This document shows positions 4,267 to 34,120 of a stretch of 64,000 bases of DNA, in pieces. The notes under the pieces are model-generated. The model saw only the letters and a program-made list of their open reading frames with translations. It searched no databases and was not told the origin of the DNA. Every line of letters begins with the position of its first letter. Within the stretch, counting starts at the first letter, position 1. The stretch is from Dimorphilus gyrociliatus. Lineage: Eukaryota; Animalia; Annelida. Location of the stretch: contig CAJFCJ010000075.1 of the NCBI GenBank assembly GCA_904063045.1, forward strand, positions 17,611 to 81,610. Reading direction: 5' to 3'. Both the position numbers and the translations under genes were made by a program.

Positions 4267-5291
4267 TATGTTCCACCTACACCAAACACTTTAACCAGAG
4301 TTATTCTTATAAGAAAGTCAATTTAGTACTCGACACAGAAGACTTTGATGAATGCCTTCATAGTTGTAACTCTCAAAGTATTTGCACAAGCTTTGAATTC
4401 AACAAACTGACTGGAAAATGCGTTAAAAATGTATTTGGATCCCAAGGAAAGAGTCTGCAAAAAGCTGAAGGTTTTACCTATTATTCAAAAATAATTAATG
4501 CAGGTAACATCTTCACAAACGTAACACCAAAAGAATGGTGGATTTCAATTTTTCAATTATCTCCTTTAGATTGTGATAACTGGTTGAAAAGTGACGGTAA
4601 AATAATTGACACTTGTGGATGTGGAATAGAATCTGTGAGTGCTGCTGATGAGGAAAGGTGTAAACAACTTTGTGAACAGAATAGCCAATGCACAGCTGTA
4701 AATTATTTCTCTAGTCAATCAATAAACTGTCATCTTCGGAGGAGTGTCTGTCGATGCATCTTTGTCAGTCTATAGTCAAGGACATATAATACATAGACCG
4801 CTTTGTCTGAGTAAGTTCAAATTGATTGTCTATCCTTTTAGACTAAAATTACAAATTGAATTTCCTTTATTTTTTACAGCCATGTTTTACTTGTCCATAA
4901 GTAATATTTGCCACTCTAACACATCCTCAATTAACCATTATGCCACATCTCTTGGTGATACGAACACTCAATGTGCGGACAACGCTAAAAGTGTTCCATT
5001 ATTTTCAAAGATAATATTAACAGCCTCTGACAAGTTTATTAAAAAAACCGAAATTGAAATCGCCATTTTTACGAAGGGAAATAATGAAGATTGTGAGAAT
5101 ACCATTGTTTCTCTTAAACAGAAACCACACGAGAAGCTATGCTCGATTACTGAAGTTTTGAGTAATTTGTGTAAATTCTTGTGTTCTGGTAGCAATTTTG
5201 AAACAATTATTATTACTAACTTGACACCAAATATAAAATATTGTGAAATTGAAGTGTCATCTGAAGGTAAACTGGTAAATGTCTGTATTTA

Positions 5292-10130: not shown

Positions 10131-10689
10131 CATTTTATACTATTTTATAGGAATTATAATGGTGCAACTTTAGAAAGACTTTTATTTCGTAGAGTTAACT
10201 TTAAAAGGAAATGTGTCAAAGTTGTTTTTCTTAACTATTAAAGACTACATAAAGAATTGCGAAATTTTGTAAGCAATTAAGAGCACCAAGCGATAAATAT
10301 TTGTTGTCAAAACACCTCACCCTACCCTACCAATACAAAGAATTGCTATGGAATGAATGTATATATTATATACATATTTATCTGAATACAATAAAGTCTG
10401 TTATTATGGTGTTACAGTAATTATTTACTTATTAAATGAAACTGATGTTGACAAGGTTAAAATAGAAAACTAACAAACAAACAGAGGATTCAGAAATCAG
10501 ACATAAAAAAAAATCATTTTTTGTATGTTTTGCTATCCAACATTTCATTAGTTAAACAAGAAATATTTTGGAGTTTTAATTCAACCAATATAACTTTTAG
10601 CTGTTCAAGATCTTTGGAAATATCCGACGAAAAGATAAACTCTTCCAAACGATCTATTCTATTATTTAGCTCTAAAAATTTATAGTTAA

Positions 10690-12296
10690 TTAGGATGATT
10701 GATTGATTGATTGCCTTTTATAAAACAAACCTGTAAATTTATTAACATGTTCACTCTTGAGATTTTCTTTAGCGCCAATATCCTTAGAGAACATTTTGCA
10801 GATAGATTTCGTGATGTATTCGAACACTTTGTGATCTTCTGCCAACATTGTTGGATCAAGCTTTACAATAGCTAAAAATTCATTTAAAGTAGTAATAAAG
10901 ATATTCAATACAAGATAAATCATGATAGATGCGTATGATATAATGTATATTTTGGCGGTAAAACCACCATTTTCAGACAGTATTTCAAAGTCTAAATGAC
11001 CAAAAATTGTTATCAACAGTGAATAGCACGTGTATTTAAAACTTTTATAGCTTTCTGTAAATTTTCCAAGGCTAATGTAGCCCCAACAAGCGTAGCCAAT
11101 CAGAACAATACAACAGCAAAATCCTAATGATATTAATTCACCACTTGCTTTCTTAATTGAACTTACAAGGACTGATATTGTTCTTGATATTTTCAATAAA
11201 CTTAACACATAGAGTTGGCCAAAAAATCCGCAAAATGCAATAAATATTATAAAGAATTCATTGACAGTAAAAAATAACGATAGGTCAATGTATTCGTGTC
11301 TGAAATTCATAACGTATTCTACAGCTTTCACTCCAATTATTGTCCTCCAGATGTATAATACAACTGCCCAAATGAAGCATACCAACGAAAGGATTAACAG
11401 TAAATTAGGCATCTTTGCGTACTTTTTATAATGATAAATGCTTTGAATGACTAAGGATAGCCATGTTAGAACTGACAAACCTTCAAACACAAGTCTAACT
11501 AGACCACCGGCTCCTGTATATCTATACAAGTTTAAAGAATCACTTCTAACTGTTGTTATTATGCCGCCAAAAGGTTTGAATTCAAATGACCAAACAGCCT
11601 GAGAAACTGTTTCCTGATTCAATATAGTTACTTCCAATTGAATGTGACGCGTTTGACGGTCTAGCCAACCGAAATTTTTCAATTCAAATATAATATTCAA
11701 AGCTTTGTCAGCCATTTGTCCTAATGAAATTAAATAGCCTCTCTCCTGTACTGAGTATAAGAAAGCGCTGTGCGTTGTATTTACATTGAAACGATCCCAA
11801 TTGACAGAAAAATTCCCAGTACTACTAGCAGAATTTGAATAGTATCCAAAACATTTGTAGCTTTTCAATAGTATTTTCATACTTGCAATAGTTTCGCATT
11901 GGTGTTTTTTAACTCTCTTCTGAAAGAGTCTGACTGATGAAAATCTCATATGATTCAATTCAGCCGTATACTTTAAATCGTACGTAGATAGATTCTTATT
12001 ATTATAATGGGTTTTTGGATAGAGTTGGGGAATTGCGTTCTTTTCCATCCAATTCCAAAATTGTTCATAGTTCTTTACCACATGGATTTTTGATATGACA
12101 TTCGCTATTGATCTATTCTGATAATAAATCATTGGATTACGATTGCTATAGCAGATAAACGTAATAAAGATTAAAAAGATTGCGTGGAGGAGAATATCTC
12201 TTATCATATTAAACATCTTCCCTTCCAATTGTCTCTCTTCCTTTGCCTTATCATATTTGTCTGCCGCCTTCTTTAAAAGTTCTTGAATATTCAATT
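10690..12296 (-). CDS. Last exon of the PKD1-like gene: TOP (polycystin) domain and 6-TM polycystin cation channel domain
   Basis: LLHAIFLIFITFICYSNRNP...FWNWMEKNAIPQLYP...VRLFQKRV...LKNFGWLDRQTRHIQLEVTI...SLNLYRY, plus six hydrophobic segments and a pore-like FKYTCYSLLITIFGHLDF. Confidence 0.92.
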
Positions 12297-15200
12297 CTGT
12301 TATAAAAAAATAAAATTAATGTCGTCTATTATCTAATCTATTCAGTTAATTCAATGTTCTCTTGCCTTTTGGAATGTGAGACAGATTGTTCGTTTCCAAC
12401 TTTCTCATGTCTCCAATATCGTTTTCATACTGAGTTAGGGCAGCATCTTTCTTAAACAAAAACGTCAGCAGAAATACAACAAATATTACTTTGATTGGTT
12501 GAACTAAAACGATGCTTTGTAAGAATGATAAAAGGAACGATATCAACCATTGTAGTGATTTCTCCTGTCCCCATTGTATAGAATATAAAATTGTAAAAAA
12601 TGCCGCTACGATTGTCGTTAAAATTGCCACAATCCATCCCAAAGGAACGGTATACTTTTTCCATTTTTTCGAACTAAAGAGTACTGTAATCAGAACCAGT
12701 CCAGGAAATACAACAACGCTACTCGCCAAACCAACATATAATTCATAGACAGTAAAAGTAACCGGACCGAATGACAATCCAACGTGACCTTTAGCCTCTC
12801 CAGAATTTTTGTAAAACATACAACTGGCAATCATTGACAAAAATAGAGCAACAAAGCAAACTGTTAATCTTTGAAATCTTGTAAATTGAGATTTAGATCT
12901 TTTCGCTCCAACCGACACCCATAAATGATCATTTGTTAATCTTTGCCTTAAATTTCTCTTAAATAATTCATCTACATTCATTATTTCCTCGTTTCTTCTC
13001 GCAATGAGAACTCTTTCTACTTGACAATCGGCGTGTATAGGCGACAACCATTGATCGCAATCAAAATTATACCAAGCATTTGCAACTTTATCAATGATGA
13101 TTATCCTTGATAAGAACCAAGGATCGTACTCTTTCGCTGAATTGTTATCTTTCTCAAGGGAGACTTTAATACAGATGATTGATCCAATAGCACTATTTGT
13201 TGTCATAATAAATGATCTTACACTTCCCGCGTTAAAGGAGACCACTTCCTGCGAAATTAATATCCTATTTCCGGTAATACTTTGACTCCCATAGCATGTT
13301 AAAGCCACTTTGGACTTGGTACCACCTTTCCTCTGATTTCCGGTGTAGACGTGTACTTCGTATTCATTTGTATCCTTTTTATAATTGTCCAATAATGGTA
13401 AAGGAGTCCAACGTAGCTTATCTCTTTTATCCAATCTTCTTACTAGTAACGCAAGAGGAATGAACAGAACAAACAACGAACATATTGTTCCAAAGACAGC
13501 TGCATTATTTGCCAATTTATTTGTAAAGTCGTTGAATATTGTATAAAAATCTATAAGATTTGGCGCCAATTCTAATTCGGCACCCAAACTCCCAAACAGA
13601 TTGCTTGTAAATTTTGTTTTCGACGCTGTCGTCTCTTCGTTGACTTTACACGAATCGCTTTCTTGCCAAACATTCCCGTTCCACAATTTACACAATGGAT
13701 AAGACATTTGAATACTATAATTGAGTATTTGCTTTGAGCAGTTGGAACACGAAACAACGGCAAAAACTGTTTGATTTACTTCCGGTCTAAGCATAATTGT
13801 TCTTCTATACTCGTTGCAATCTTCTTCTTGATCAAAATTAAATGAACACGTCTTATTCAAATTTGGTAAGATATATGACGCATTATTCATTTCTCTATTT
13901 GGTTTTAGATTATAACCAATGAGCACTGAGATTGCATCATCGCTATTTAAATTAAACGTCAGTATTAGAGCGTTCCTTGTCGCATTTAGAGTATGAATGG
14001 CTGACTGATTTGTTGTGTTTACGTATTGAAAACCTTTATAAGGATTCTTCATATTTAAACTAAGAGAGTAATTAGTTTGGGGAATATGGATACTTCTCTT
14101 CTTTCTTCTCTCTTCAATCTTTAATATTGAATTACAAGGCCGAATTTGGAATTCGGCAATGGATGACGTAACATTCAAAGCAGATTTATCCCACATATAA
14201 GGATTAATACCTGATATTAATAATGTTCTTGTAATACAAGAATGATTGCCATTTTCAAAGGAATTTAATTTTACTGATCCAAATTTTGACGTATCGCTAT
14301 CATTGTATTTAATATTCATTGAAGATATTTTCTCAATAGTGATGCTCATTTTTTCAAATTTAACATTTAAAGCTTGCTCATCCACTCTCTGTTCTAATAG
14401 CAATTCATCACTGACATTATGAATGATCTTGACAACATTTGTCATCACATTTCTCAGTTTGTCATTACTACTATTATTGAAAGTTGTTTTTGTTAGATTT
14501 GTTGCAATTTTCGAATCATCATCATCATCATTTGAGATTATATCGCAAAAGAATAAAGTTGATGATGAATTATTAACATTCATAAGGCTAATGATCTCCT
14601 CTTTATCTTGTACATCTTCCTTATAACTATCAGCTGCAGTAGTTGTTAGAATGGATGTTTCTAGTAGGCCTAAACAAAAAAGAAAAAGAATGAAGAAGAA
14701 GAAGAAGAAGAAGAAGAAGAGGATATCTCAATGATTATTCATACTTATTGATATATCCTGTTTGATTCTTTTAGAAAGTTTGTTTCTATTTAATACAGTA
14801 TTTAACTTTCCAATATGATTAGCAACATTTATCTATAAAAGTAAAGAAAAAAAAAAGAGATTTTCGTACTAGTTGCAAGAGGTTAATTGAGTTTGAAGAA
14901 TTGAACCTGCGAATTGATATCCACTTCCTTTGGTTTGTATACAAGAGTATTTACAAGTCCATTATTCTGTTGAAGCTCGTCAATTGATTTATAAGGAATT
15001 TTTAAAGTAAAATCAATCATATGTTTTCTTGCCTTAATGAACGATAAAAGAGAACTTTGTTAGACGCTTTTTTACGTATAAATACAATAATAATTCCATA
15101 CTTTCACTCTTCTCATCCTCTTTTTGCAATTATCCTCGTCTTGTTCTATTTTAGAGAAATTATTTACTACTTCTAATGATCTATTAAGATTTGCATTGAG

Positions 15201-18200
15201 AATTGATGATACTGAATAGATTGTCGAAGATACTTGACTAACGTTGCCAGCGTTCAACTGCAATTTTAAATTATCATTCGATACAATATCCAAGGTCAAG
15301 TCTAATAGTTTATTTTCAGGGATAGGAGGCGGTTGGACATGAACATCAAATATATATTCATATTGATCACCAATCGAATCAATTACGCTTATGACCGTTT
15401 CAGTAATTCCATTTTTTGGATTACCAACTGGCAACATCAAGTGTACAGCTTCCTGATTATATGAAAAGTAGAGTAAGAAACTCTGTTTTCTTCCCTGAGG
15501 TCTTGCCCTATACTCGTATTTTAAACCTGACGAATTTTTTAATTTTTTAAATTCCTGCCAACCTCGACAGCTTATTTCAAAATTGGTTATTGACGCAAAA
15601 CCAGTTCTAGGTTGGCAATTGCAATTACCACCGAACGGTGGTCTATTCATAAGAAATGTTTCATTTACTGATCCATAGTCGTTATTGTTAATTTCCATCA
15701 TTCTTCCTTCAACAATTAAATTATACAGAGTACCAGGAAGAAGAGTACTACCTTTAATTTCAATCTCATCACGTGATGTGTTTCCAGTGGTTATATCACT
15801 AAGATTATTAATGAAAGACCACGATTCATTGGCATTAATCATTATTTTCCAATTATAAATCATTTTCCAATACAAACTTGTGCATTTTGACAAACAAGTT
15901 ACTTTATAAATAATAGAAGAAGAGAGTCTTTTCTTCCAAAAACAATTCTTTTTACATCTGTTTATAGGGCCATATATTAAAAACAACAACAACAACAACA
16001 ATAGTATAATGATAGATATACCTCATTTTAAGTGTTGGTCTTTTGAATGGTTGTAAATAGAACATTTGCTCATAAGTCGCTTCTCTCTTTTCAATATTCG
16101 ACAGAATTTTAACGCTAATAATATATGTTGTATTTGGTATCATGTAATAAGTATTTAAAGTCAACTTTCCATTTCCACCATTTTCAATAAATCCAGGACC
16201 ATTTCCAAAGCATCCTCCATTTTCTTGAAATTCATTCAAAGTAGGAGGTACATTTAAAAAATCTACTCCTATATGTTTGTCATTCGTTGGTAACTTTTCG
16301 CCGATTTTCCTACAATACCACTTGAAATAGGTATCCTTCAATTTTTCATTAGGATCATTATCCGGATCGAAACTGAAGAATTCAGCATTAAATGTCTTAT
16401 TCGTAAGAAATTCGGCAGTTGTCCAATTGTTATTGTCAATGTTTACAATTAGAGGACTGGGTATTATTTCTAAATAATATTTATAAGTATTATTGGCAAA
16501 TGGCTGATTGAACATTTGTAAAAAATATTGAATTTCGTAAATTCCGTAAGACAATTGTCTTTCTCTTAAATTCAATGTTTTATTATTTGACGTAAATTCT
16601 AAAGAATTGGTATCCATTTTGAAAATTTTCCATTCGTATAGTATTCTATTTGTTTTCATACAATCCCAACTTATGTTAACTGGTATTTCAACTGGACTAC
16701 TCTTTATAACCTTGAATGGTCTATTTTGAAAAGTATAGCCAATTGGTACAGACGCATTTGGACTATAACAATACCAATCTGCGACTGTTGTTGTAAAATT
16801 TCTCTCATCTTTAGTTATATGATTAAATCCTTTGACTTTAATATTATAATATCCTATCTCTTCGTATAGATAATCTATTACAATTGTTGTTTGATCATAG
16901 GCAATTTCAGTAAAGTTTATCGACTCGCCGAAAGCGTATTCCCGACAGATGTCGTTAACGCCAAATGCCATTTTCGTTGAATATTTATCATCGCCAAAAT
17001 CAAAGATAAAACACGAATTAGTTGCCATTCTGCCAATTTTTGCAATTACAGTTGTTACATTTGTTAATAGGACGCTTTCATTAGCCGTTAATTGTTCTAT
17101 TGTTACAGCGTCTAATATAATTTCTGACAAACTCTGTAGGTTTTTAACAGACAATAAATTACTACAAATTACATTTGTAGTTAAATTGCCAATTGAATTT
17201 CTTGAAAAATAATACTGATATACAAATGAAATTTTTGGTGGCCAATTTGAGATAAATTCATGAGTTGATTCGCCATTGCTAAATTCAAATATACAATAGA
17301 TATCCTTAAGGATTTTCTGAGTAGATTCAGAATAGAGTTCGTAGGTAATAATTCCAGGTGTCCACAAAACGGAATTGTTTGCTTTTAGGCCAATATTTTC
17401 AATTCTATTCTGCACAACTATCTTAATTGTTTGCTCTTCTCTACTTGGATTATTTTCCCCAACTACAATTATTGAATAATTTCCAATTTGGTAAAATAAT
17501 AGATTAACCAGTAATGGTTGATCGCTGGCGAATATTTTTGGATGATTTTCCAATAGAACTGATGATAAATGATGTATTTTATATATCACTGACGAACCAG
17601 CTTCAACAGTAATCTTTAAAGATACATTTTCCATTATTTCGTAAGCCGGTTTTGCGATTTTAACTGATAAATTCTTAATTTTCTCAAATACCAATAAATT
17701 TAGTGAATTTTCAAATTTACTAATCAAATTCTTACATGATATTTTAACTGAAATATTTTTACCAACATCACTTTTTTCGTATTTGTGACTTTGAATGATT
17801 GACGGTTGTTTACTCACACGAAATTTATGAATTATATTTTCATTTGTTGGTTGAAAGATGCAAGAAACATTTGTTGGAGATTGTCTATGTTGATTAATTC
17901 TCATTGAAAAGTTTACTGGCTGTTCATCTAAACAACTAATGTTTGGCCCATTGATAGCAAGATCAAAAATAGGTACTTGAACAATGATTGTTGAAGGTAA
18001 CGCTGTCGCTGTTAATTCATTAACGCTATTTCTTACTAAAACACTTGCATTGAAATTTCCAGCTTTCTCGTATTTGTGGATCCAATAGTTACTCTTATAA
18101 ACTGTATCTATCAGTTTACTATCAGACTGGCCATCTCCATAATCAACAACTGCTAGAATATTAACTCCAGTTGAGAGGGAAAGTGTAAAATTCAACGATT

Positions 18201-21200
18201 CATTAACTTTGATGATATTGTTGTTGACTGAAAAATAAAGTCCAGTTATTTCCTCTTCGAGTGAAATGTTTTTTTGAACAGAATGATTAGAAACATTATT
18301 AGAGCAGTTTGCTACTAATGTTAAATGTCTCCTTTCCCTTTTATTAAACATTCTACTATATTCGTATAATACAGATGTTCCTTTTGTTAAATCAACGTTA
18401 CGAAGCAACGTTTCATTTCCATCTCCCATTTCCAATAAACACGATACATTTGTTGGTTTGAATCCATTTTCAATCGTCATCTCCACAATTGTTAAATTAA
18501 CTTTTCTAGGCTTTTCATACCGAATTATTAAATCAATTTTCTTTATTTTATGTTGAATAATTACACTTTCAACAGTTTCACTCGAACAATTGAAAAATTT
18601 ATTTCTAGCCGTAGCCATTGCTTTATATTCACCAATCATCGAGTAGGAATAATACACATAAAACGGTTCTAGATTTGCCATTAATAGAAAATTCTTCAAA
18701 ATTTTAGTACTACCATCTCCGAAAGAAATTTCATATTCAACATCGCTTCCATTTTTTAACGTTAATTCTAAAGAGATATTTTCAAAGGATGACCAATATC
18801 TATCCTGAAATTTCATATTTAAACCAATGACGTTCTGTTGCAGTTTAATTATCCGAGTACTCGTGATAATAGATATTGAATTGTTACAGGTTATTATTGC
18901 CTTTGATCTAAATTCATCGTTTAAATAGTTGTAATCAATAATTAACGGTTTAGACAAAGTAAGAATATCAGTTTTAGATATGATGAAATTTTCACCAGTT
19001 TCAACAATACACGTCATCAGTATACTCTTTGTTTCATTGTTTATTACATACTTGTAGTTTGCGTAGAAGAAAACTTGTACAGGAGGTTCATTCGGAGTAT
19101 ATTCGGTGTATATAGAAACGTGGTTCTTTAATATCGGTTCCACAAGCTTGATTAACCAACAAATTTCAATTCCGGCCTCATTCCAAGCAGTTAAACTAAC
19201 GTTATATATACCATACTCTGTGAAATTATACTGTATAATATTCTCAATTAATCCGAATGAATCTACGTGATCTGCTTTAAACCAATTCCATGATATTGAA
19301 TCTCCTCTGTCTGTAAAATTTACAATGTAATTTACATCACTTCCTTCACTCCATGTAACTGAAAATTGACTTATGGTTCCTTCCGTTAAATTATTAGTGA
19401 CAGTCCTAAGATTTAGATCTTTGATTGTTAGGCCTAAACAGTTTATATAGCTTTCAACATTCGTACAAGAAAGACTATTTTTAGAATGAAGGAGACTATA
19501 GGATGATCCATTTGCCGGTAGAACTTTGAAACATAAAAATTTGTATTTAGAGCAGAGACTTCTGGGAATTTTGAATGTGTTAATAAATTCCATTAAAATA
19601 TAACAATTGATTGATAAATTTGTTTGAATAAGCGATGAATTAACAATACTTTTATAGTATTGTACTGAATCATTCATTTCCAAATTAATATCAGTAAAAA
19701 ACAATGTAATATTAAAATTATTCCTGTTGAATGGAACGTTTTCAACGCTAAATCTTTTATCGATATTCGTCCATTTTAAATATGTTTGTAAATGTTGAAT
19801 ATAACCCCTTACTATTGTTTGTCTGGGAATAGTAAGATTTGCCTCAATATCAACAGCTGAAATAGAAGATAAAAATCAACAGATTATTGACTGCAGACAG
19901 ACAGACTATACCTGGTGTACAATTTTTATAAGGTGTTAGGTCAATGCATAAAATATCATTAGTTCTGTTACTTTCCGTAAAAGATGATGAATTTGACGAG
20001 ATAATTCTAAAGCAAATGTACAAGTCACCTTCGCACTGTGACCTTGAAAAATAAGTTGAAATTTGAATTGTTAAATTTAAAGTATTTCCGATTTTAATGC
20101 CATTTTGTTTTTGCTTTAATTCTAGTTCTACCATCTTCCAATTAGGATTTGTACTATTAATATCTTCTATTCTACTGGTTGAAACACTTTCAATATCATA
20201 ATTAAAATATTCATCGAATAATTCTATGACGTCATGAAGATTTGAAGGTAAATTCAATAAAGTAATAGTAAAAGTATGATTTTGAATAACGCTTCTATAA
20301 AACTGTTGTTGCCCATCAAGTAGAGTGATTTTCAATATTGATAAATCTAAATCTGGTTTGCAATTTACAAAATTTGAAAATATAGAACAAATTTGATTGT
20401 TTGCCTTATCCCATTCCAGATATTTGCTGTAAGGCGATTCCAATACATTAATGCAGATATACGTCTTGTTGAAACATTGTAATTTCGGAAAGTTGAAGAA
20501 AACTGATAAAGATATAGTGGCTTCACCCCTTTTTGATGAATTTTTTTCCATCCTACTAAGTAATTCTTTGTTTAGTCCATGTTCCGAAAATAAGCTTACG
20601 TTTTTCCTCCATTTTGCGGTTAGGTTACTACTAACTGAATCGGAAATATATATTGTAAAATCATAGTTGGTTATTGGTAAAGTTGATTCGATGATTGGCC
20701 AACCAGCATTATTCACTAATAGGGCTGTTAAATTTACGATACTCTCTTCCTCCCTGATAAACTCACCCTCAAAGTTAACCTCCTTCAAAAGAATGTCTGT
20801 AGCTATTATTTAAAAAAAGAAGCGTAATGTTAATAAAAATTCAAAAAGCCTAAAAGGTATAAACAGTTTAGAAAGCCTACCTCGATAACAATTGTTATCT
20901 TTGCGAATAGTGTAGGCGGAACATTGACATGAATAAGGTAAATAATCCAAATCATAGGGTTCTTTTTCCGGAATACAAACTGTATTTTGTTCAAAACAGT
21001 TTGAATCCGAATCGCAATTTTCGCCAAAAGCCTTTTCCATTTCTGTTAGAATGAAACAAAAAAAAGAGAAAATGATTAAAATAAATCAATTTTATTCAAT
21101 AAGAAGAAAAAAGACTTTTTACTTTTTGTTTTTGTGTTAATTTCAACTTCGCATAACGTTAATCTAAGATTTTCACCTACCATCCAGATACCTAGATATG

Positions 21201-24200
21201 AACCTTTAATAGATTCATCGTCGCAGTCAATTGTCTGCTTTACACCAGCTCCAATAGCTCCAGTGTAATGTTTGCATAATCTAAATACTGAAGTATCAAA
21301 ATGACTTTCATCAAACGTCTCCGAGAGACCTATTGTAAAGTTGGATAATTCGGAAGCTATTGTTTTCGAAAGATAAAGAATGCTTAACAAGATTTTTACC
21401 ATTTGATTATAAAAAAAAAAAACAATTATACAGTGTTTGTTTGTTTTACTCACAGCAACAATCTTTCCTATTCGCAACTGTTATTCCTGTGACATTAAAA
21501 ACTTTTTGTAAATTGACAACCCACCAAGGATTGGTTGTAAATTCCCCCATTGCGCAATAGCCTAGTGTAGCATCACTAAGTGATATGCCATCAATTGCCA
21601 GATTAGCTTTATTGTCCCCTTTAGTTGTCTTTTGAAAAGCTATTTTACCAAGAGCAACATTATCTAAAAGTGGAAAAACAGTTTGTTGTTTGTATATGAA
21701 TAATACATGGAAATCGATTTAAGAGAAAGCTCTCATAGTCCTAGGCGTAAGATCTACGCCTAAAAACAAGGAACTACTTTCTCTATCAATCAATTTCATT
21801 GAGTTAACTAACATTTATGCCGTGGCTTAATTTTAAAAATATACTTTTCAACTTGAAATTGGTATTTATCATTTAAATCAGTCATATCAATTGACCAATT
21901 AGAAATGAGGCCTAGCAGATTCGATGTAGAACAAGAATTATTTGGAAACCACCAACCACTATTTGTATTTTGTGCGCAAGATAATTCATTGTCACTGTCG
22001 ATTGTGTAAAAATTGGCAGTATTTAAAAAGTCGGCTGATTGAGCACTGCCACTTAAGAATTTTGATATGGTTCTTGAATATAATTTACTTTCTGATTCAA
22101 TAAGAATTCCTTGGAATTCATTGTGCACGTGACTGCCATCTTTCGACCACATATCAATTCTTCCATTATACTCTCTAAAATTTGTTAAATAGCTCGCTAA
22201 TTGGTTGCCAGCCCAGAATTCTTTGTCATCTTCATATCCATTCTTATAATCAGACCAAGATTTTGGCAATAAACCATCCATTGATAGCTTTTGTCCAAGA
22301 ATTGTCCAATCTCCAAAACATTTTAATTTAGCACTCTTATCGGCTCCTCTAACATAAAAGTTAGACGACGATTGCAGCGATAGACAATCTGCAATAAATT
22401 CAACGCAACCATACAATTCAATTTGCATAGCGAAATATAAATTCTTATCAAGAAGATTGAATTTAAGAAAACGGGTTATTAGATTAGTTTTAAATGTATA
22501 AAATCTTGCGTAATAGTGATTGAACAACCCTTGAAAAACACGATTATTACTGATATCCCAAGAAATATTCTTCCAGTCTACATTGTTTAAAGATGATTCT
22601 ATTGTGAAATTTTTAACATATCCGGGTTCATTCAATTTTCCTGTTCCTTGTAATACGAACGAAGAGATTGTCAATGATTGATCGAAATAGAAGAGGATCC
22701 ACGGATTTAAATCTTCATTGCTAGATCTCCAAAAACCTTCCGGGCCTTTTCGAACGTGCAGCGGTAGTTTAGTTTTATCCGTTGATGAGTCGTATTCTGA
22801 AGAGACGTTCCATTTTATTCCCAAAACCTTTTCTTCAATAAGCCTTTGAAAGCATTTACCTAATTCACGAGAAAAAGGAAGGATCAGGTCACGAAAGATG
22901 ATTGAATGAATGAACAAACAAACCAGGATAAACAGTTTCAAAGTATAGTTTATCTTTATCGTCAACGTCTCTTTTGAGGTAAGCGTTTTTTGAGTAGGTA
23001 TTTGACGAATAAAGTATACAATCCTTTGTATTTGTATCAAAAGCAAATGAAATACAAATAAATCTGATCTCTTCATTACACGCCATTAAACAGTCAAATC
23101 TGGTATTAAAGTCACTTTTATAAACCATTTTACTGCTAGTTGCATTTAATGAAGCTGCATCAACAACTGTCCACAACTGTCCAATTTTTTCATTAACTGG
23201 TACTGCAAAAATTTTCCTTTTCTTATTAATAAGACCAATGGCAAAAAATTTGTTTACATATTGCCTCTTTTTCACAAGATATTAAAATATTGTCTAAATT
23301 ACAAGATAGCTTTATCCAGAAACCAGACAATATGTCAAAACCTCCACAACTACCGGATCCTTTTGATGTGTGCCATCGAATTATCTCGTCCGTTGGTAGA
23401 GTACTTCCATCAGGCCAGGTATATTTACCAGTTTTATATGTTAATCCCATACGTGTTTTTTGCGAATTTCTAATTTTAAACAATTTACTCGCTTTTTTGT
23501 GCAGTGACAGATAAAAACAAACAGTTAAAAAAAAGGACTCACTTTGAAAAGAAACCTTGAAGGAATACATTTAGAATTTCATCATATTTCGGTGAAATTA
23601 GGTTCCCTTCACCAAGCCATGGTATACCTTTACACTGCTCAATTGAATTGGCATACGTGGCTGGTGTAGAAAATGAATGAGAGATGCATTTTCTACCAAA
23701 AACAAAATATCCAGGCGGACATTCTAAGAATGGTTAATTAATTCAATTAGATTAAATACTAATATTTAGTGTATAGACTGTTCTATACCTGAGTACTTTT
23801 TACAATGAATAGATATTTTCCAGCAAACGAAACTTTCACTTTGAATAAAGAGCGCAACGTGTACAGCCATTATGGGAATGGATAATAAAACTTGGTGTAA
23901 TGACTAGAGATTGAGAGAATATTTCAAATTTAACATTCAACATTCAACAGACAACAACAAAACACCTTACATTCGACTGTAAATGATCAATGCCATTTGT
24001 ATAGTTATACCAGTCAACAGAGTTGATTGAGTACTGAATTGTTAATTTCATAAGTTGGGTTGCATTGGAAACTATTGAAAATCCAGTTACTGTGTAAACC
24101 GTTTTAAAATTTAGACTTATTTTAATTGGTTGTTGTTGTTGGGTAAAATGTTTAGGGCATGCTAAATTAGCATTTTCATTAATCAATAAACTTCCCCAAT

Positions 24201-27200
24201 ATATTGAATTTCCTTGAACAGAATCTTCTTGGATAAGGATTCTTTCTAATTCATTTGATGGATTCTTTACTGGATCTTGTTCTGTATACAAAACTGCAGA
24301 AATAAGACGCTATTCTTAACAAAATCTACTCGTCATATTTACGTTTAATGCAGCCAATAATTTCCAAGCGTAAAGCTTTCTTCCCTAGCCATTGTTTTGG
24401 TGTGAACCTCATAAATCTTGATTCTATTGTATTGTTAAAAAGTAACAAGTACTTCATATTTCTCGTCAAAGTAGGATTACTTCTAAGATAAAGTGTCTAA
24501 TTGTGAAATGGACTAGATAAGACAGTTAAGATTATTAGTAAAGTGTCCTATTTACTTTACGATTTAGAGGCTCCTCATACATTTTCCATCCATGAATTCT
24601 ATATAATGAGTACTCGACCGAAAAGTCGTAAATATAATACTTTTGATTTTTACAGGATTGGGAAATAAAACCTGTAACAAGGTATACATGACCTAAATCT
24701 ATTTGTATATAGTCATTTGGTGGTGGCGAATTGGTAATCCAACAGTTTACGCTATCCAGTTTAATATTATATATATAGTAGGGCTTGGTATAAGATGGAG
24801 AAGTTATTTGCGAAGCATGCATTTGGTTTGTGTTGCCAATACCCAGTGGATGGTTGCATTTAGGAGTAAAAATTGGAATTTCATCTTCATTTAAATATCT
24901 TCCATACAGTTGAAGAATAAGAGAAGCATAGTTATTTTTACTAGTTGGATTGAATCTTAACGACTCACAAACAATGTTTGGAGCGAATTCTATATGATTA
25001 TAATAATCTGAGCTTTCTTGTATAAAATAATTCTGTTAAAGTAGTATTTTCCATAAAAATCATGAATGTTTTCTTAAATGATCTATTTAAAGCCTTACAA
25101 TTATATCACCGTCCTTATCCCTTATGGCTAACCATTGGTCATATGAAGATCTTTTGTAAAAAATCTGCGCTGTCTTTGTATATTGATTAAAAGAATATCT
25201 GCCGGATGTAGTAAAGGCAGTTAATCTTACTAATCTGTTAAAATTCACTTCCAAATAGCATTCGGTGCTCAACGCTAGCGAGCACACTGCTGGTACGTTA
25301 GAAGTGCGACTACTTCCCACCAAGTAATTGACGTGTATGTGATTATACGCTCCGTAAATGTTGACTGTTACATTAAATTCTTGTTCACTTTCGTCATTTC
25401 CTTCCGGCATTAATCTAGAACTTTTATCATCAAAGCAAAACTGCTCTAAAAAATTAGTGTTTACTTTATAACTAAATTTCGTTATGTCATATTTTAACAT
25501 GGAACTCGATATATTATATAATTGGCATTTTACCCGTTTATCCAATCTGTACGCGAATATTTTGTCATTACTTGCAAACTATTCATTTTTTTTATAATAA
25601 TACATACACAAAATGCCATCCAACTGAAATACACCAGCTACGGGAGAGACAATAGTCCAAGCAAGTTCTCAGATAGGTATGATCTATATACGCTTTAGGA
25701 CTAACCAATGGATTATAATTTGGCTTTAGACTATATATAGGCTGACATTTTTCCTCAGCAGTATAATCTCTCTCATCGTCTGGTACTGTTGTTTTTAAAG
25801 AATGAAAAATTGTTTATTGAATGTATTAATTATTAGAAATGATGAATAATTGTATACAATTTGGTAAAGTTTCGCACATTGCATATGCCAAATCATTGCA
25901 AGTGCTTCTATCAAAGAAATCTCTAGCGATAATACAAGGCCAAGTGTAGACAGGAACATAATTTGAAGCTCTTGTTAAATAGTTTGTAACTTTTGTTCCA
26001 TCCAGCCAAACAAATTTATCCAGCGTTGTTTGCTTAGCACCTATATAGATACCGTACATCTTCTTACTAATGAAAATATAAGCAATTGCTCATTAATCAT
26101 ATAGTTAAACATGTAAATTTTGAATTTTTGTACTTCAAAACGAAATGTCTTTTAACAAAGTCTATCTCTATTGTAGTTTTTGGCATTACCAAATTGCCTT
26201 CACCTTTCCAACTAAATCCATTCTGACAGAATTTACGACACGCCTCAAACGTTCCTTGTACATCGGAAGTTGTATAACATTTATTCAAATTTCTTACCGA
26301 ACCTGGTGGACAAACTGGCGCTTTTTCACCAAAAAATTCAAATCTCATACATTCTTCGTGTCTTTTATTAAAGTTTAGGCGGATGAAGCGAAACCTCAAA
26401 GCAGGCGACGAGAAAATAACAGTTCTATTCATTTCGTACTCACACGTTATTTCCTATTCAAAAACACATACAAAAGAAATATATTATCTAATAAGATAGC
26501 GGTGACTGTTGAAAACGGCCATTTTGGAGCTATTTTGGTTTGGTAATGAATGAAGGAATGATGGGTTTAGGATCAATATTTAAGCAATTGATTTGTAATC
26601 AGGTAGGTTCAAACAAATGGGTTAGCAACGATGGAGAAGTTAAAACAGGGTCCAGGGATATGTTAGGGTTATGGTAAAACCACAAAACTGTGGCCGTTAT
26701 TCAACATTCATCCAAAGATGCCATTATTAAAAATTCACCTCTTCAATTCTATTCATATTTGTTTTATTGTACTGAGCTCCATATATTAAAGTATCATTGC
26801 AGTTATCCCATTGTAAGCTTTCTTTATAATATATGAAAATCCTTTCTATATAGTATATCACACCAAAGTCAACAAACCACCAAGCACCCGTGTCACTGTC
26901 GCTCATACACCAAAAGGTATCTTTAGTATTGAGTGCCATTTTAGGAGAAGTAGCCAAACTTTTGTAGGATGATGCAATAATGATCTTAGGGAATTTATCA
27001 GTTGTATTCAATTTTGGATGTTTAGCTGGATAACCATACAACTCCATAGTAATACTACTAACTATATGATACTCTCCAGTATAAGTGAATCTTATATAAC
27101 GAGCGATAATTGGCTGATGAAATACCAATTGAAAAAGTTGGTTTGAATGATGAACAGTATATTTTTTTATTTCTCCATTGTTTGTTGTATGATCGTACCA

Positions 27201-30200
27201 TTCAACCAGATCATTTGTATACATCACTCCAAAGCTTTTCAAATAGCCGTTTCCATTACACTGACCACTTGATATAACTTTTACAATATGATGTTGAATT
27301 CCCAGATCAAATTGCCACTTTCCCGATGAAATATAATATCCAAAAGTTTGAAAAACAGGTATACAACCCAACCGAATTTCGTGAATTCCGTAATCTAAGT
27401 TGAACAGTTTTTCGGATAACATTTGAGAATGTAATATATAAAGATTTGTTAAACCGAGCGGTTTTGTGAATTTATCAACATCAATACCACTGCTGTAGTT
27501 GAAACCAAATATTTCAAGCCTTAACGCCAATCTTCCTTGATAAATTCCAGGATAAAATACAGCGTATTGAGCAATCAGGTAGGGATTGAATGCATTTTGA
27601 ACGACAGATTTATGGTTAATATTTCCAAAAAATTTCTGAAAAGATTATTGTTTATAATCCTATACCAGTTTATGTTGAAATATCAAAAAAATAAAATTAC
27701 CCGACGTTCTCCCTTAGACGTTTTTACAATATTTACAATATCTGTTCTATTACTGACGTCCAAATAGAAATATTTTATCCACGTATTATCCCTACCACCA
27801 GCGCCCTCTATATTAATTCTTGTCATTCTAACTATTCTTCCAAAATTGAACTTATTTTTAAAAATATAATGAATGTTAGGCATTAAATTAGTAAACGTTT
27901 TAGAAACTAACTTTTATATATGAATTTACGGATGATAGACGAAAGTGGCCGCCATTCATTGGGTTAGATAAACCGTAGAATTGTCTATCAACCATCCGCA
28001 ATTGAGATACTCCATACTTGGTTGGATATAGTACTACATCAGTTTCAATGTTGCCATCCGAAATTCCAGTTGGACCATTAATTAAAGCTTCCTCTTTTTC
28101 ATCACCCTCAACTATAGAATACATTTCCCAAGTGTCCCAATGGCTAGTATCGTATATCGGTTCAGAATTTGTATCGGAAGTGGTAGTACCATTGTACAAA
28201 TAGCATTTTCTATCAGTATTCTTAAGCTTAAAACTGAAACCTTTACACTTAAAGCTTGTTTGATGTTGACACAGGTACGAGCAACCCTCAACCTGAGCAG
28301 TTTCATAGGTTTGCGCCAAATGAGCAGAATTTAATCGAGCATTGTGAAGAAAGAACCACTTGATGATTGGGGCATCGATTTTCCCTTTTAGAAGAAAAAG
28401 AAACGGCAATTTCAATTTAATAATAAAAAATGATACGGATAATATAAAATTGAATTAAAACTAACTATTAGCCTTCATTTCGCATATATAATGACTATAA
28501 ACAGAACAATCTACGTTATGCCAGCCTTGATTTGAAGAAAATGCGCAATATTGTGAAGGAATGTCAGGCTCCCCGGTCATGTAATCACGATCGAAATTTG
28601 TAAAATTATGCCGAGCGTCATTAGTCCACTGCCAATTAACGTTTGAATTTAGCTTCTTCATTCGACTAGTTTGCGCAATGGAATCATTTCTTATCAATCC
28701 AATAAATATTCTAGATGTTAATCTAAAGATTATAAAATAGTGCTCAAAACGTAAAATTCTGATTTATCAAAAAAAAGAGACTGGCAAACCTTCTCATTAA
28801 ATATACGGCAAGTGAATCTTCTTCTATTGAGGAAATTTCAATGACGTATGCTTCACTAGACCAGACAACATTCCTACAAATACTCCTTATCAAGTTAGTA
28901 TCATCATTCGAACTACCGTAGATTGAACCAGGAAAGTATTGATAGCATGATTCACCGTATTCTATTGTATTTGGTGGACAAGCTTCAGCTTCGCATGCAT
29001 TAACAAAGTACTCAACGCACGGGATAACGAAATTACTAGCTAAACTCCAGAAGTTTAATTGTAATTTAGTTGCCGAATGAAGATTTAGTAATGTTATATT
29101 AAAGGTTTTATCATCGTCTAATCGGTTAATTGTATATTTATCCAATGGTCTCCAAACGTTATTGCCCCTAGACCAGTCTATGCTCCATTCTGGAATTGGT
29201 GTATTTGAAAATTGAATTTGAACAGCTGTTAAATGATATAATAAATGAAATTCAATGACGATTGTAGATTCCACTCTTTTATAAGTTGAATTTGACGTTT
29301 TATTGTAAATATTTGTCGTTTTCTGTTGCATAGGACAAGTTGCCGTTGTTGTTGCATTGTTTTCAAGGTCAAGTCTTGGACAAACGGCTATGAAAGTGAA
29401 ATTTAACTCATTTTTGAAACAGCAACTTTTTAACTCTTACCATCTAATTTCCCATAAAATTCAAATAACGCACATCCAGAGCCGATGACGCTATCTGAGT
29501 AAATACGAACATATCTAGCTCTTATAGGCTCGTCCAATCTTACTTGAATTGGGGTGAGCGTTTGCCATTCGATTGATCCAGAAAACTGTAAGACTTCTCC
29601 ATTGCTATTTTTGACCTTTTCCAACATGTCTTCAATATGGTAGGCTACAGCCAGAGAGAATTTTTTAAGATAACCTGCGGAAGTTGCGGACGGAGCTACA
29701 CTCAACCCATAGAATTGAATGGGCAATGACCATGTTACATCGAACCAATCGTCACTCTTGACTGGGATAAAACACTGTTTCTGGAAAGGATAATCACTGG
29801 CACGGCCTCTCAATCTTGCTAGAAAAGGGGCATAGTGATAAGTAGTACTAGTCGTAATATGTTTTGCGCTTATTTGCATATCATCTATAAGACCCGACTC
29901 CATTCCCAATGCAACTCCTTCCAGATCTGTATGAGAAAAATGAATAGAAGCATTTTTAACGGATTAATGCCAATCCAAACCTCTAACTGAAATGTTTTCA
30001 TCCAGCTGACAACCCCGAACTGATAAACGGAAATCCGGTGTCAAGTGCCAACTTTTGGGATTAATGCGAAAACAACGTAAAACAATTGGCAATTTGAAGA
30101 GAATAACCCTAGCCAGAGACCAGAATTTATGACCAATCATTTCCTTCAAATGATGTAAAATTAACGACAATTTAAATTTATTACACAGAAGAAAAAAAAC

Positions 30201-31467
30201 TTACAATAATTTCTTTTGTTTCTTTTCTATTGTACCAAGAAAAATCTAAACAATTCAAACTATGCAAAAAGTAATGATTCTCTATTGTATGTTTGCCGTG
30301 TCTCTCTCCACCTAGAATATGATATCCAGTTATATTGTAAAGATTTATGAGATCTACTTGAAGCCATTGGAATAGGTTTATGTTTTGTGGTCTAAAACAT
30401 CCCAGAAAGTTGTCTTGTTTGAAACTTTCAACTTTGGCTTGTTGAGGTTGAGACTGATCCAAAACATTTACAGTAGATGCTGTAAAACTCGATTCAGGAA
30501 GATTATCTATAACAGTACTTTCCTTCATACAAAATGGCGCCGTATTGCCTTCGCATTCCCATTGATAAATGTTAAATGTTGAATCAAAGATTAATTTATC
30601 AAAATCCTCAGCAAAAACTTTTGTCGAATGTATAAAACATTGTTTGGTAATAATATTCCACGAAATACTAGAACAATTGCCGAGTTTACCAGAAAAGCAG
30701 TCCTAATAGGGTTCAAGAAAGAAGGAATATAATATTAGCAAGTTCAATATCAAAATGAATATATTATACTTGAAGACAAATCTCTAATGGACCCTCGAAT
30801 TTAACGGATGGTCTAGGATCTTTATACTTCTTTAGAACGTGCCAATAAGGTCTACAGCCACTCTTATCAACTAGTTTATTGAAAGAAAAAAACTAACATG
30901 AAGGTGTTTGTTTTGTTTGTTGATTTATTTATTTAAAATGACAAACTTTCTGATATTTCACAAATATAGCCAGGATTGCTATACGTCTCAGGAACGTCTA
31001 ACCACATTCCAGTTTTTGTTTCCATGACTACGTAGGGTTCGTTGTTCATGTAATTATTTTCGCCATTGTCGAAATTATGAAAATTCAATGGTGTTCCATC
31101 AAACCAAACGAAATCAGTGGAAAACTTTCCTTGCGTATCATTTCTAATTAAGCCTATATAATAAGAATTTCTAATAGAATATTCCAGATATAGCTGAAGA
31201 AATGAAAGCTTTCTAGCAGATTCAATTTTTATCACAGTTCCACTAAGATTTTTGCACAACGAGTTGATTTGTAAAGGTGAATTTGAATTGTTTTCAAGTT
31301 TGATTACGCAATTATCCAGATATCTTATCCAGCCAGAGGGACAATTATCACCTATTTGTTTTTGTTTGCCTTTTTTAAACACGCTAAATTTTTTAATTAT
31401 TAAATTTACCTTGCGCAATTTTTACCATAGGAATTAAAGCGAAAATCAGCATGAAAAGCAACTCCAT
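10690..31467 (-). CDS. PKD1L: Giant polycystin-1-like (PKD1-like/REJ family) 11-TM receptor-channel with a multi-lectin ectodomain; 33 exons, about 6,109 aa
   Basis: Every junction was traced by hand and stays in frame; the exon sum of 18,330 nt is divisible by 3. Exons: 31410-31467, 30947-31351, 30770-30870, 30205-30702, 29981-30143, 29441-29926, 28790-29387, 28466-28710, 27912-28384, 27701-27850, 26739-27635, 26134-26453, 25858-26066, 25608-25785, 25099-25546, 24556-25032, 24343-24496, 23971-24293, 23789-23903, 23543-23723, 23258-23469, 22924-23202, 21813-22859, 21454-21663, 21123-21356, 20881-21042, 19912-20802, 16022-19856, 15102-15957, 14907-15032, 14745-14832, 12366-14669, 10690-12296. 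Signal peptide MELLFMLIFALIPMVKIAQG. Confidence 0.88.
12366..14669 (-). CDS. PKD1-like exon: GAIN/GPS region, TM1, PLAT/LH2 domain, TM2-5
   Basis: CKLWNGNVWQESDSCKV (GPS), TM1 AAVFGTICSLFVLFIPLALLV, YEVHVYTGNQRKGGTKSKVALTCYG...WFLSRIII...FDCDQWLS (PLAT), HLWVSV...FTRFQRLTVC, QWGQEKSLQWLISF...VQPIKV. Confidence 0.92.
14745..19856 (-). CDS. PKD1-like exons: tandem PKD repeats (3.8 kb exon) and REJ module
   Basis: Repeated Y-x-I/V-x-F/Y-G-D-G ... Y-x-x-x-G-x-Y/F-x-V motifs (YEISFGDG, VVDYGDG, IFDFGDD). REJ signatures: FFSFDPDND, YFKWYCRK, MNRPPFGGNCNCQP, FEISCRGW, MLPVG, VIDSIG. Confidence 0.9.
19912..21663 (-). CDS. PKD1-like exons: F-type lectin (FTP/fucolectin-like) domain, EGF-like/EB module, and beta-sandwich repeats
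   Basis: Spliced YNVALGKIAFQ...ANLAIDG...CAMGEFTTNPWWVVNLQKVFNVTGITVANRKDCC|SSELSNF...LTLCEVEIN; FGENCDSDSNC...CQCSAYT...C; repeats of the YICINV/CFRII...N-x-x-N-D/N-x-x-C type. Confidence 0.8.
21813..22859 (-). CDS. Exon encoding an F5/8 domain followed by a fibrinogen C-terminal (FReD) domain
   Basis: NPWILFYFD...QGTG...QIELYGC, then FADCLSL...CFGDWTILGQK...WSDYKNGYED...FWAGN...FYTIDSDNELSCAQNTNSGWWFPNNSCSTSNLLG...FKIKP. Confidence 0.85.
22924..31467 (-). CDS. N-terminal lectin array of the PKD1-like gene: 4 C-type lectin and 4 PAN/apple domains, plus about 9 F5/8 domains (a tenth lies in the next exon)
   Basis: CTLs: CPSGWIRYLDNC...YYIGL...WLDVP...YICE; CPPNTIEYGESCY...EPD...WHNVDC...YICE; CPPGSVRNLNKCY; CPPGYFVFGRKC. 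PANs: ICLQDC...CSSISW...C; GCSYLC...CKGFSF...CYLY; TCLDYC...CISVGW...CQLY; DCLMAC...CISFAF...CILY. F5/8 domains end in RLSVRGC, FEFYG, LEIFG, MELYG, LEIIGC. Confidence 0.85.
26499..26714. mobile_element. MITE (about 200 bp) with ~25-bp TIRs, inside a PKD1-like intron; older copy of the family at 51467 and 55255
   Basis: Ends gttgaaaacggcca...tggccgttattcaac; internal gttagggttatggtaaaaccacaaa matches the other copies. TSD is degenerate. Confidence 0.7.
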
Positions 31468-32850: not shown

Positions 32851-34120
32851 AAGTAAACTTCATAAAAATTGGAACACCTCTAATTTTGAATAGGCCAACA
32901 TATTAACAATGTTTTCCACTAAGAAAAAAGAATTTTTTTAATTTTTTTTGCATAAAATGTTAGATGAAGCTTAAATTTATATATAATTTTCTTTCAAATA
33001 CGATTTAAGTAAGATTTTACATCATTTTTTTTTGTTTATATCATGTACTGTTTTATTGATTTTTTTTTCTTATTTGGCCACACTTCATAATAATTGGAAC
33101 ACCAACAAAAATGTTCCTATTATTCCTATTTATGAATATGACTACCCTTTTTTTGAAACATTGCCTGATTCTATGCCCCATTCCATCATATAGACTTGGT
33201 ATCAACCCTGGCTGCTCTTTTATAAGCTCATAAGAGCATTTTTTTATTTTTTTCCACAATTCAAACCTGAGGATGAATTGTAGACCATCATATACCAGGT
33301 TTTTGGTAAGGTGCCACATGTTCTCAATTGGGTTGAGGTCAGGGCTCTTTGCTGGCCAATCTAGAGGATGGATGTCATTCATCTTAAAGGCTCTTTTAGT
33401 CATCCTTGCTGTGTGGCACCCAGCATTATCTTGCTGGAAGATGTATTTCCTCCCCATTTTTACCTCAATCTCTTTGATAACAGGGAGAACATCTTCCACA
33501 ATAAAACAGCTGTAATTTTCAGCATTAAGCCTTTTCTTTATCTACCAAATTTGGAATATTCCATCAAATGTTATCAGTCCCCAGACCATTACTCCATCTC
33601 TGCCCATATCTTTTTCACTATCTTTGGTCCACATACCAAAGTCATTTGGCCCACTCAGTGAGAATCTAGCCTTGTCAGTGAAAATTACTTTAGACCAGTC
33701 TAGATTACCACTGATCATCTGAAGACAGAAACTTTTTCTCCTCTTACAATTATTTGTTGTAAGATCAGGTGTTTGCCTAACTCAATTATACCTAAATTTT
33801 GTTTTTTCAACTCCCTTTGAATGGTTAATAGGCTAACATCTACATCTAACTCTTTCAAAAATTTTCTTGCTGTCAACCTCTCCTTATTTATTTTTATTTT
33901 CTGTATAGGCCTCTTCATCCTGCCTATATCTCTCTCCATAAGTTTCTTTGAACAACCTCTATTCTCCCCTTTTGGTAGTTGATACCTTAAAATATTGCTA
34001 ACAGAAGAGGGTGCCATTCCTAAAGCTCTTGCTGTGGCTCATAGTTTTGGTATTTCATTGTATTTCTTGAATACAAGCTCCCTAATGTCTTTACTCCTCA
34101 TCATATTTAAAAAAGTACAA
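32850..34120 (-). mobile_element. Tc1-family (DD34E) DNA transposon, defective
   Basis: HTH-type N-terminus (ORF 33715-34017), DWSKVIFTD...VMVWG block (33500-33720), and IFQQDNAGCH...LDWPAKSPDLNPIENMW with exactly 34 residues between D and E. Repeated cataa-aattggaacacc motif at 32861 and 33086. Frameshifts; no intact TIR pair found. Confidence 0.9.

Follow-up and report, generated by a model that had tools for sequence, protein, structure and literature searches.

A polycystin-1-type gene with a large array of lectin-type domains in the annelid Dimorphilus gyrociliatus

Can lectin-type domains of five families and a polycystin channel belong to one and the same protein? This question is raised by a 64,000-nt stretch of the Dimorphilus gyrociliatus genome (assembly GCA_904063045.1, contig CAJFCJ010000075.1, positions 17,611 to 81,610; hereafter the window, whose own numbering is used throughout). 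It is AT-rich eukaryotic DNA of about 30% G+C, in which open reading frames (ORFs) lie densely on the minus strand between 10.5 and 31.5 kb. Pfam searches on these ORF pieces returned, from upstream to downstream, Lectin_C, PAN_1, many F5_F8_type_C, Fibrinogen_C, PKD, REJ, PLAT, Polycystin_dom and PKD_channel, and the families named in an initial annotation of the stretch are all present in the order it had given. According to our analysis, minus-strand positions 31467-10514 form one expressed protein-coding gene of the polycystin-1/REJ family, and we are highly confident of both its structure and its family assignment.

The junction between the lectin array and the polycystin core

Whether the locus holds one gene or two is decided at the intron 21664-21812, between the fibrinogen-related domain (FReD) and the F-type lectin domain (F-lectin). 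The FReD ORF ends with ...AAGCCACGGCATAAAT, followed by GTTAGT with an in-frame TAG, and on the 3' side TTTTAG precedes ATAATGTTGCTCTTGGTAAA. The junction sequence is ...CATAAAT/GTTAGT...TTTTAG/ATAATGTT (slashes mark the splice sites) and its in-frame product is HK-Y-NVALGK, just as the initial annotation had described. A stop codon directly after the FReD ORF would suit two adjacent genes, a secreted multi-lectin ending at 21811 and a separate polycystin-1-like gene downstream. The public protein model CAD5126713.1, which uses another donor here and cuts the FReD short by 48 aa, points the same way in that predictors are evidently unsure at this junction.

RNA evidence was taken from a public run of 2017 (X1), kept as assembled contigs, which contains 0.70 of the sampled words of 19500-25400 and 0.92 of those of 10500-19499. 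Eight contigs, each at least 99% identical, align to 19500-25400. In them, 12 introns between 19857 and 24555 are removed (Table 1), with CT..AC ends on the plus strand corresponding to GT..AG on the minus strand, and their joints connect exons 16 through 28. An 873-nt contig spanning three exons joins 22433-21813 to 21663-21454, lacking exactly 21664-21812, and runs on past the next intron, with 210 nt on its shorter side. In further contigs the F-lectin exons are joined with the EGF-like exon and exon 27, and the beginning of the 3.8-kb PKD/REJ exon is in turn tied to exon 27. The contigs thus show lectin array and polycystin core linked in one frame on spliced RNA.

This contradicts a division into two genes, and further observations speak against it. 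No in-frame ATG precedes the domain in the ORF of the F-lectin exon, so that this exon cannot start a protein, and it lacks a signal peptide; the 149 nt of the intron are too short for a promoter. The join is kept in three paralogous proteins, which align gap-free across it, and in three loci of another organism, which carry an intron at the same position (see below). The RNA contig and the gap-free paralogue alignment also back the 21812-side donor instead of the one used in CAD5126713.1. Neither operons nor trans-splicing occur in D. gyrociliatus (PMC7854359), and together with the spliced contig this rules out an operon or trans-splicing reading of the locus. We therefore consider two adjacent genes extremely improbable, and the single gene proposed in the initial annotation is upheld.

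One gene might still yield two products. If intron 21664-21812 were retained, translation would end two codons past the FReD (...PRHKC) and give a soluble lectin of about 2,680 aa besides the full receptor. The in-frame TAG lies five bases into the intron, which is long (149 nt against a species median of 66 bp (PMC7854359) and apparently about 70-80 nt at the homologous loci) and holds an 8-bp hairpin, and contigs drop rare variants, leaving room for a minor isoform. Against this, the intron is not represented in any X1 contig: bin 21667-21863 has a depth of 1.9, the value expected from its 51 exonic bases alone, so that no contig retains it. There is no AATAAA within the intron, and the introns at the same position in two of the homologous loci (L002 and L003) also hold in-frame stops, which makes the early stop unremarkable. 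We regard a second, soluble product as very unlikely. The hairpin itself is perfect (TAGGCGTA / TACGCCTA, with a 5-nt loop) and lies at 21742-21762; a search of Rfam over 10000-32000 gave no match.

Two features of the RNA data weigh against the reading as one gene along its full length. Direct RNA evidence is limited to 19705-25099, and for the 5' third (25100-31467) the support comes from the open frame, homology and public annotation. The X1 contigs are also short (343-1,097 nt) and of low depth, and no single molecule across the whole gene was seen among them.

Gene model and domain architecture

The gene model was obtained with a splice-aware dynamic program that was forced through the 12 RNA introns, with intron length capped and coding length rewarded. 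A low intron penalty over-split the gene to 89 exons and a high penalty skipped exons, and both settings were dropped. In the final model the reading frame is open across 6,152 codons. It begins at the ATG at 31467, with no earlier ATG downstream of the preceding in-frame TGA, and opens with a hydrophobic signal peptide. Exon 5 was set by eye to 30143-29981, encoding the end of a discoidin domain, in place of a 25-nt exon of the first model. Introns measure 40-285 nt, most of them 55-80, which is consistent with the species median (PMC7854359). The longest (285 nt, 26454-26738) lies inside a discoidin domain, and no exon seems to be missing there, as the match to the domain hidden Markov model (HMM) continues unbroken across it.

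Two details near the 3' end extend the initial annotation, which had spliced 33 exons from 31467 to 10690. Its in-frame splicing, start codon and signal peptide hold, and its end does not, the last exon and a GC-AG intron having been missed. At the exon 32/33 boundary, all GT donors left a gap of 27-49 residues relative to the closest paralogue, P0151, and were rejected. We chose the GC-AG intron for this reason; only with this splice do three paralogues align free of gaps, at 57-70% identity over 232-240 aa. The remaining 32 introns all begin with GT. Exon 34 lies past the stop at 10690. It matches the final 101 aa of CAD5126713.1 at 99% identity, and five paralogues have its motif L-N-x-R-I-D-x-L-E.

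With 1,200 aa from the PKD/REJ exon as query, an exhaustive HMMER search ranked DgyrCDS14777 (5,543 aa; CAD5126713.1 / A0A7I8WEU8) first, so that the public record already predicts a single coding sequence. Direct alignment of our model to CAD5126713.1 gave 99.9% identity over 5,541 aligned residues, which identifies the gene as DgyrCDS14777; the 93% displayed in the HMMER search is hence not to be taken for divergence. The public model is 609 aa shorter than ours. It lacks seven segments of 72, 45, 48, 53, 89, 68 and 203 aa (578 aa in alignment gaps), which include parts of CTL1 (the first C-type lectin domain, CTL) and of a PAN-like domain, the final 48 aa of the FReD and roughly four helices of the channel. 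The loss of the FReD end and of four channel helices means that the public gene model should be corrected.

Table 1. Features of the polycystin-1-type gene in the window. TM, transmembrane span; E, E-value.
Feature	Position	Strand	Residues	Content and basis
Whole coding region, DgyrCDS14777	10514..31467	-	6,152 aa	34 exons; own splice-aware model
Exon 1	31410..31467	-	signal peptide 1-19	start codon and hydrophobic signal peptide MELLFMLIFALIPMVKIAQ; hydropathy
Lectin module 1	28942..31286	-		CTL1, weak PAN-like, two F5/8C, one degenerate beta-sandwich; family HMMs
Lectin module 2	26322..28908	-		CTL2, PAN2, three F5/8C; Pfam and family HMMs
Lectin module 3	23796..26258	-		CTL3, PAN-like (cysteine pattern, HMM E 0.003), three F5/8C
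Lectin module 4, first part	21813..23664	-		CTL4, PAN4, F5/8C, FReD; four introns removed in RNA
CTL, 4 copies			48-161, 737-861, 1434-1544, 2124-2234	family HMM E 1e-27 to 1e-34; Pfam Lectin_C
PAN, 2 firm			872-951, 2246-2326	family HMM
PAN-like of module 1			161-250	Pfam E 0.004, under cut-off
PAN-like of module 3			about 1545-1640	HMM E 0.003; cysteine pattern
F5/8C, 9 copies			starts 285, 455, 997, 1164, 1300, 1678, 1837, 1993, 2359	family HMM
Degenerate beta-sandwich			about 590-725	no significant match
FReD	22404-21813	-	2480-2676	ends ...KIKPRHK; Pfam Fibrinogen_C E 1.2e-15
Intron between FReD and F-lectin	21664..21812	-		phase 1; GTTAGT...TTTTAG, 149 nt
F-type lectin	21014..21643	-	2684-2834	exons 24-25 and first codons of exon 26
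Exon 26 and exon 27	19912..21042	-	EGF-like about 2835-2880	exon 26 EGF-like, six cysteines; exon 27, 297 aa; translation
RNA-removed introns, 3'-most part	19857-19911, 20803-20880, 21043-21122, 21357-21453, 21664-21812	-		X1 contigs
RNA-removed introns, middle	22860-22923, 23203-23257, 23470-23542, 23724-23788	-		X1 contigs
RNA-removed introns, lectin module 3	23904-23970, 24282-24342, 24497-24555	-		X1 contigs
Exons 28-29	15102..19856	-	3176-4740	PKD repeats (best 18004-18243) and REJ (15225-16680)
Exon 32	12366..14669	-	TM1 5202-5220	juxtamembrane region, TM1 (13441-13497), PLAT (13009-13362), TM2-5
GC-AG intron	12297..12365	-		G/GCAAGA...AACAG/AA, 69 nt
Exon 33	10731..12296	-		TM6, polycystin/TOP domain (11527-12084), channel-like TM7-11 (10879-11493), pore loop FGH
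Exon 34	10514..10671	-		C-terminal tail, motif L-N-x-R-I-D-x-L-E, then stop codon

The inner half of the protein carries features of the PKD1 family. Pfam matches were found for PKD (E 7.8e-22) and REJ (E 5.3e-17 and 5.5e-27) on exons 28 and 29, for PLAT directly after TM1 (E 2.4e-14), and for Polycystin_dom (E 3.3e-16) and PKD_channel (E 3.6e-16). By hydropathy, the signal peptide is followed by 11 hydrophobic spans grouped 1 + 4 + 1 + 5 (TM1, PLAT, TM2-5, TM6, TM7-11), which is the topology of the family. The last ORF, of 534 aa, aligns over about 480 residues to solved structures of polycystin-2 and PKD2L1 (E about 1e-18) and weakly to PKD1L3. Its pore loop reads F-G-H where the polycystin-2 filter is L-G-D. 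The sequence F-G-H-L-(D/S)-F is kept in the five closest Dimorphilus paralogues, and PKD1L2-like proteins of Pecten and Saccoglossus have L-G-K.

The GPS is the family feature that is missing. There is no Pfam GPS match, and in the alignment the protein has no HL(T/S) motif ahead of TM1. At this site all Dimorphilus paralogues and the nemertean Lineus read K/R-F-T/K-S-N, with neither Cys pair nor HLT; HLT stands in the row of vertebrate PKD1, and C-x-C-x-HLT in those of PKD1L1, amphioxus and Saccoglossus. The kiwi PKDREJ row is also devoid of the motif, so that some accepted family members lack it too.

The outer half of the protein is an array of about 20 lectin-type domains in about 2,800 aa. 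Its domains were mapped with HMMs built iteratively on the family's own copies and seeded at Pfam coordinates. The array has the order CTL, PAN and two to three F5/8C (discoidin) domains, three times in succession, and then CTL, PAN, F5/8C, FReD, F-lectin and EGF. It comprises four CTLs, two firm and two weak PAN domains, nine firm F5/8C domains and a degenerate one, and one each of FReD, F-lectin and EGF-like domain. The initial annotation had counted the CTLs, the FReD and the F-lectin correctly, and its four PAN and about ten discoidin domains include the weak and degenerate copies. Pfam assigned no family to exon 27, to the degenerate module at residues 575-737 or to the juxtamembrane region.

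Paralogues, homologous loci and relatives

The same set of Pfam families was found in three more D. gyrociliatus proteins, DgyrCDS14890 (5,744 aa), DgyrCDS6354 (6,065 aa) and DgyrCDS14438 (6,071 aa). These paralogues are colinear with the array over 2,400-2,680 of its 2,814 residues, and identity is 32-61% in the array compared with 51-66% in the membrane part.

A corresponding layout exists beyond this species. Genomic contigs of the runs SRR23372228 and SRR23372229 contain REJ exons that are 36-58% identical to those of the Dimorphilus paralogues, and this level of identity indicates that they come from another organism. At three loci of these runs (L001-L003), the ORFs follow the order F5/8C, CTL, PAN, FReD, PKD, REJ, PLAT and channel, which is that of the D. 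gyrociliatus gene. Here the FReD ends with ...IKP/IIP, a stop-containing gap, apparently about 70-80 nt long, follows, and the next exon opens with N-(V/I)-A-x-(G/L)-K, which puts an intron at the position of 21664-21812. These contigs are AT-rich, and their introns are short. The presence of the layout in three paralogues and in at least three loci of another organism marks it as an old, maintained architecture. One of the loci (L002 in SRR23372228, 7181-19063) looks like the orthologue of DgyrCDS6354, with a REJ exon of 58% identity, and shows the complete run from discoidin and FReD ORFs to the channel in about 19 kb.

Outside this group, the nearest proteins that we recovered, from a nemertean, molluscs, amphioxus and vertebrates, include none with the lectin array. 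Their ectodomains are composed differently: Pecten and amphioxus proteins carry WSC plus PKD, and vertebrate PKD1 carries LRR and a single CTL. In a quick, sparse and unrooted tree of the membrane half, all Dimorphilus proteins fell into one clade (support 100) beside Lineus and Biomphalaria, apart from vertebrate PKD1/PKD1L1 and from the PKD1L2-like group. As sampling was thin and the tree unrooted, we do not claim orthology to any named vertebrate member. The nearest relatives of the membrane part outside Dimorphilus, Lineus longissimus LOC135492455 and Biomphalaria glabrata LOC106064392, are instructive as to the ectodomain. The former has lost the HLT, as in Dimorphilus, and bears EGF-type arrays in place of lectins; the first 3,000 aa of the latter are without a Pfam family match. 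Proteins named PKDREJ (Hydra, amphioxus, kiwi) fall outside the Dimorphilus clade and have no lectin-type Pfam families listed. The ectodomain of the family has thus been freely rebuilt, with LRR, WSC and CTL in vertebrates, EGF arrays in the nemertean and lectin arrays in Dimorphilus. A further D. gyrociliatus protein, DgyrCDS13672 (2,634 aa, no lectins annotated), nests within the lectin-bearing clade of this tree; either it has lost the array or its gene model is truncated at the 5' end, to judge from the predicted protein.

Compared with polycystin-1 of vertebrates and amphioxus (PKD1), the Dimorphilus protein shares the PKD repeats, REJ, TM1-PLAT-TM2-5, the polycystin/TOP domain, the channel-like last six helices and the 11 spans, as well as a very large ectodomain with a C-type lectin domain, of which PKD1 has one. 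PKD1, however, carries LRR, WSC and this single CTL ahead of about 16 PKD repeats, whereas in the Dimorphilus protein five families together contribute about 20 lectin-type domains. PKD1 also keeps C-x-C-x-HLT at the GPS, and the Dimorphilus protein does not.

A word-indexed search with the lectin half of CAD5126713.1 returned only that protein and one paralogue, and says little on other taxa. A search of the ESM Atlas for the stretch from F5/8C to REJ gave small bacterial F5/8C plus PKD clusters with scores of at most 0.74 and was set aside as uninformative. In the literature searched, we found no paper describing this architecture, and the genome paper makes no mention of polycystins, PKD, lectins or fibrinogen (PMC7854359). 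In this sense the initial annotation was right to regard the architecture as undescribed; it is nevertheless already public, as four unnamed predicted D. gyrociliatus proteins in GenBank/UniProt. The family, every one of the domains and the occurrence of lectin modules on polycystin-1-type proteins are known. The novelty lies in the size and variety of the array, with about 20 domains drawn from five families, and in its upkeep in a small gene family.

Sugar sites and possible role

To judge from sequence, "lectin" in this protein is a statement on folds. The F-lectin finds its solved matches in striped bass FBP32 (3CQO, E 1.9e-27) and eel agglutinin (1K12, E 2.8e-14, about 145 aa), and thereby has the F-type lectin fold; the FReD has the fold of its namesakes, with tachylectin-5A as best solved match (E 1.6e-14) and angiopoietins and ficolins next. 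The likeness to tachylectin-5A, ficolins, FBP32 and eel agglutinin lies in these folds. Those soluble lectins are small, secreted and oligomeric and have intact sites, while in Dimorphilus the FReD and F-lectin are single copies in a membrane receptor and the fucose triad is broken.

At the level of sugar-site residues, CTL2 comes nearest to a working site, its EPD and WHNVD aligning opposite QPD and WQNRD of mannose receptor 2. In CTL1, EPY and WLD were seen by eye in the model translation, and the site is partly degenerate. In the alignment to 3CQO and 1K12, the F-lectin retains the first Arg (NRKD) of the fucose triad known from the eel agglutinin structure, His...Arg-x-Asp-x4-Arg/Lys.

Other residues speak against glycan recognition. 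Two of the three fucose-binding residues of the F-lectin are replaced, His by Met (CAMG vs CTHT) and the second Arg by Glu (CCSSEL vs CCPERL), and none of the three homologous loci of the other organism has the fucose-binding His either. CTL3 and CTL4 have neither an EPN/QPD-type nor a WND sugar-site motif, by eye in the model translation. Moreover, proteins or lipids, not glycans, are frequent ligands of PAN, discoidin and FReD domains. Glycan binding is thus plausible for some domains of the array, and glycan binding in its canonical form by the F-lectin is unlikely. The "combinatorial glycan-sensing channel" of the initial annotation was pure inference, and the F-lectin and two of the four CTLs do not support it in that form.

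Overall, we think it probable, with clear reservations, that the locus encodes one lectin-decorated polycystin-1-type receptor subunit whose ectodomain ligands modulate cation flux. By family knowledge and by the solved 1:3 complexes with polycystin-2 among the PDB matches (6a70, 7d7e), the protein would be the large receptor subunit in a complex with polycystin-2-type (TRPP) subunits. The chances that it is the ligand-binding subunit of such a complex appear about even. We posit that the ectodomain would have its ligands outside the cell, most plausibly among the glycoconjugates of mucus, matrix, microbes or gametes, and that their binding would alter the flux of cations through the complex. 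As the HL(T/S) motif is missing, no autoproteolysis at the GPS site is expected, and the protein would work uncleaved and not via a tethered agonist. Given FGH in place of LGD, its loop may be expected to shape or tune a shared pore, the protein forming no pore alone. The conserved motif of the C-terminal tail could be a contact with the polycystin-2 subunit.

The best precedent for a glycan-triggered polycystin is found in the sea urchin. suREJ1 and suREJ3 belong to the same family and have C-type lectin domains ahead of REJ, and a fucose sulphate polymer of the egg jelly is established as ligand. Unlike the Dimorphilus protein, the suREJ proteins have only one or two lectin modules and are not known to carry PAN, discoidin, FReD or F-lectin domains.

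The main rival explanation is a mechanical tether, in which the array anchors the protein to cuticle, mucus or matrix, the complex reports force or flow, and any glycan specificity is incidental. Polycystins do act in mechanosensory neurons of an annelid: in Platynereis, PKD1-1, of an invertebrate-specific polycystin-1 branch, works with its polycystin-2 partner PKD2-1 in ciliated hydrodynamic receptor neurons (PMC6294549). Compared by description, PKD1-1 differs from the Dimorphilus protein in being mechanosensory and in that no array is reported for it, the word "lectin" having 0 occurrences in the text of that study (PMC6294549). Discoidin, PAN and FReD are common adhesion modules, canonical sugar-binding residues are lost in part, and the paralogous arrays are colinear with a conserved length, as would be expected for a structural stalk. 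On the other hand, the lower identity of paralogue arrays than of membrane parts suits diversifying recognition at least equally, and CTL2 retains motifs that come close to a functional sugar site. We consider a tether possible, if rather unlikely, and keep to the reading of the protein as a receptor subunit that responds to ectodomain ligands.

A more specific form of the receptor reading is that of a small polycystin family, kept in Dimorphilus and in at least one other organism, with diverged lectin arrays on a conserved channel core, which would turn the recognition of particular glycans, on microbial, mucus, egg or sperm surfaces, into a cation signal. This we can advance only tentatively, and deem it unlikely. 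If true, a culturable animal would offer a polycystin system whose natural ligands are defined. What activates polycystin-1-type receptors is still unsettled, and we know of a single natural ligand with good support, the egg-jelly glycan of sea urchin REJ. In Dimorphilus the putative ligand-binding part is built of recognisable lectin-type domains, each of which can be tested singly. The gene also sits in a miniature annelid with a genome of 73.8 Mb (PMC7854359) that is kept in laboratory culture, which offers concrete experimental handles.

Upstream of the gene, about 1.6 kb from the start codon, decayed pieces of a Tc1/mariner-type transposase lie on the minus strand in several frames (33056-34038; Pfam DDE_3, E 2e-09). 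They are followed on the same strand by ORFs with LRR matches (34246-36502; LRR_6, E 8e-10, and LRR_8), which represent the next gene upstream, and a run of ten Ns at 37173-37182 marks an assembly gap.

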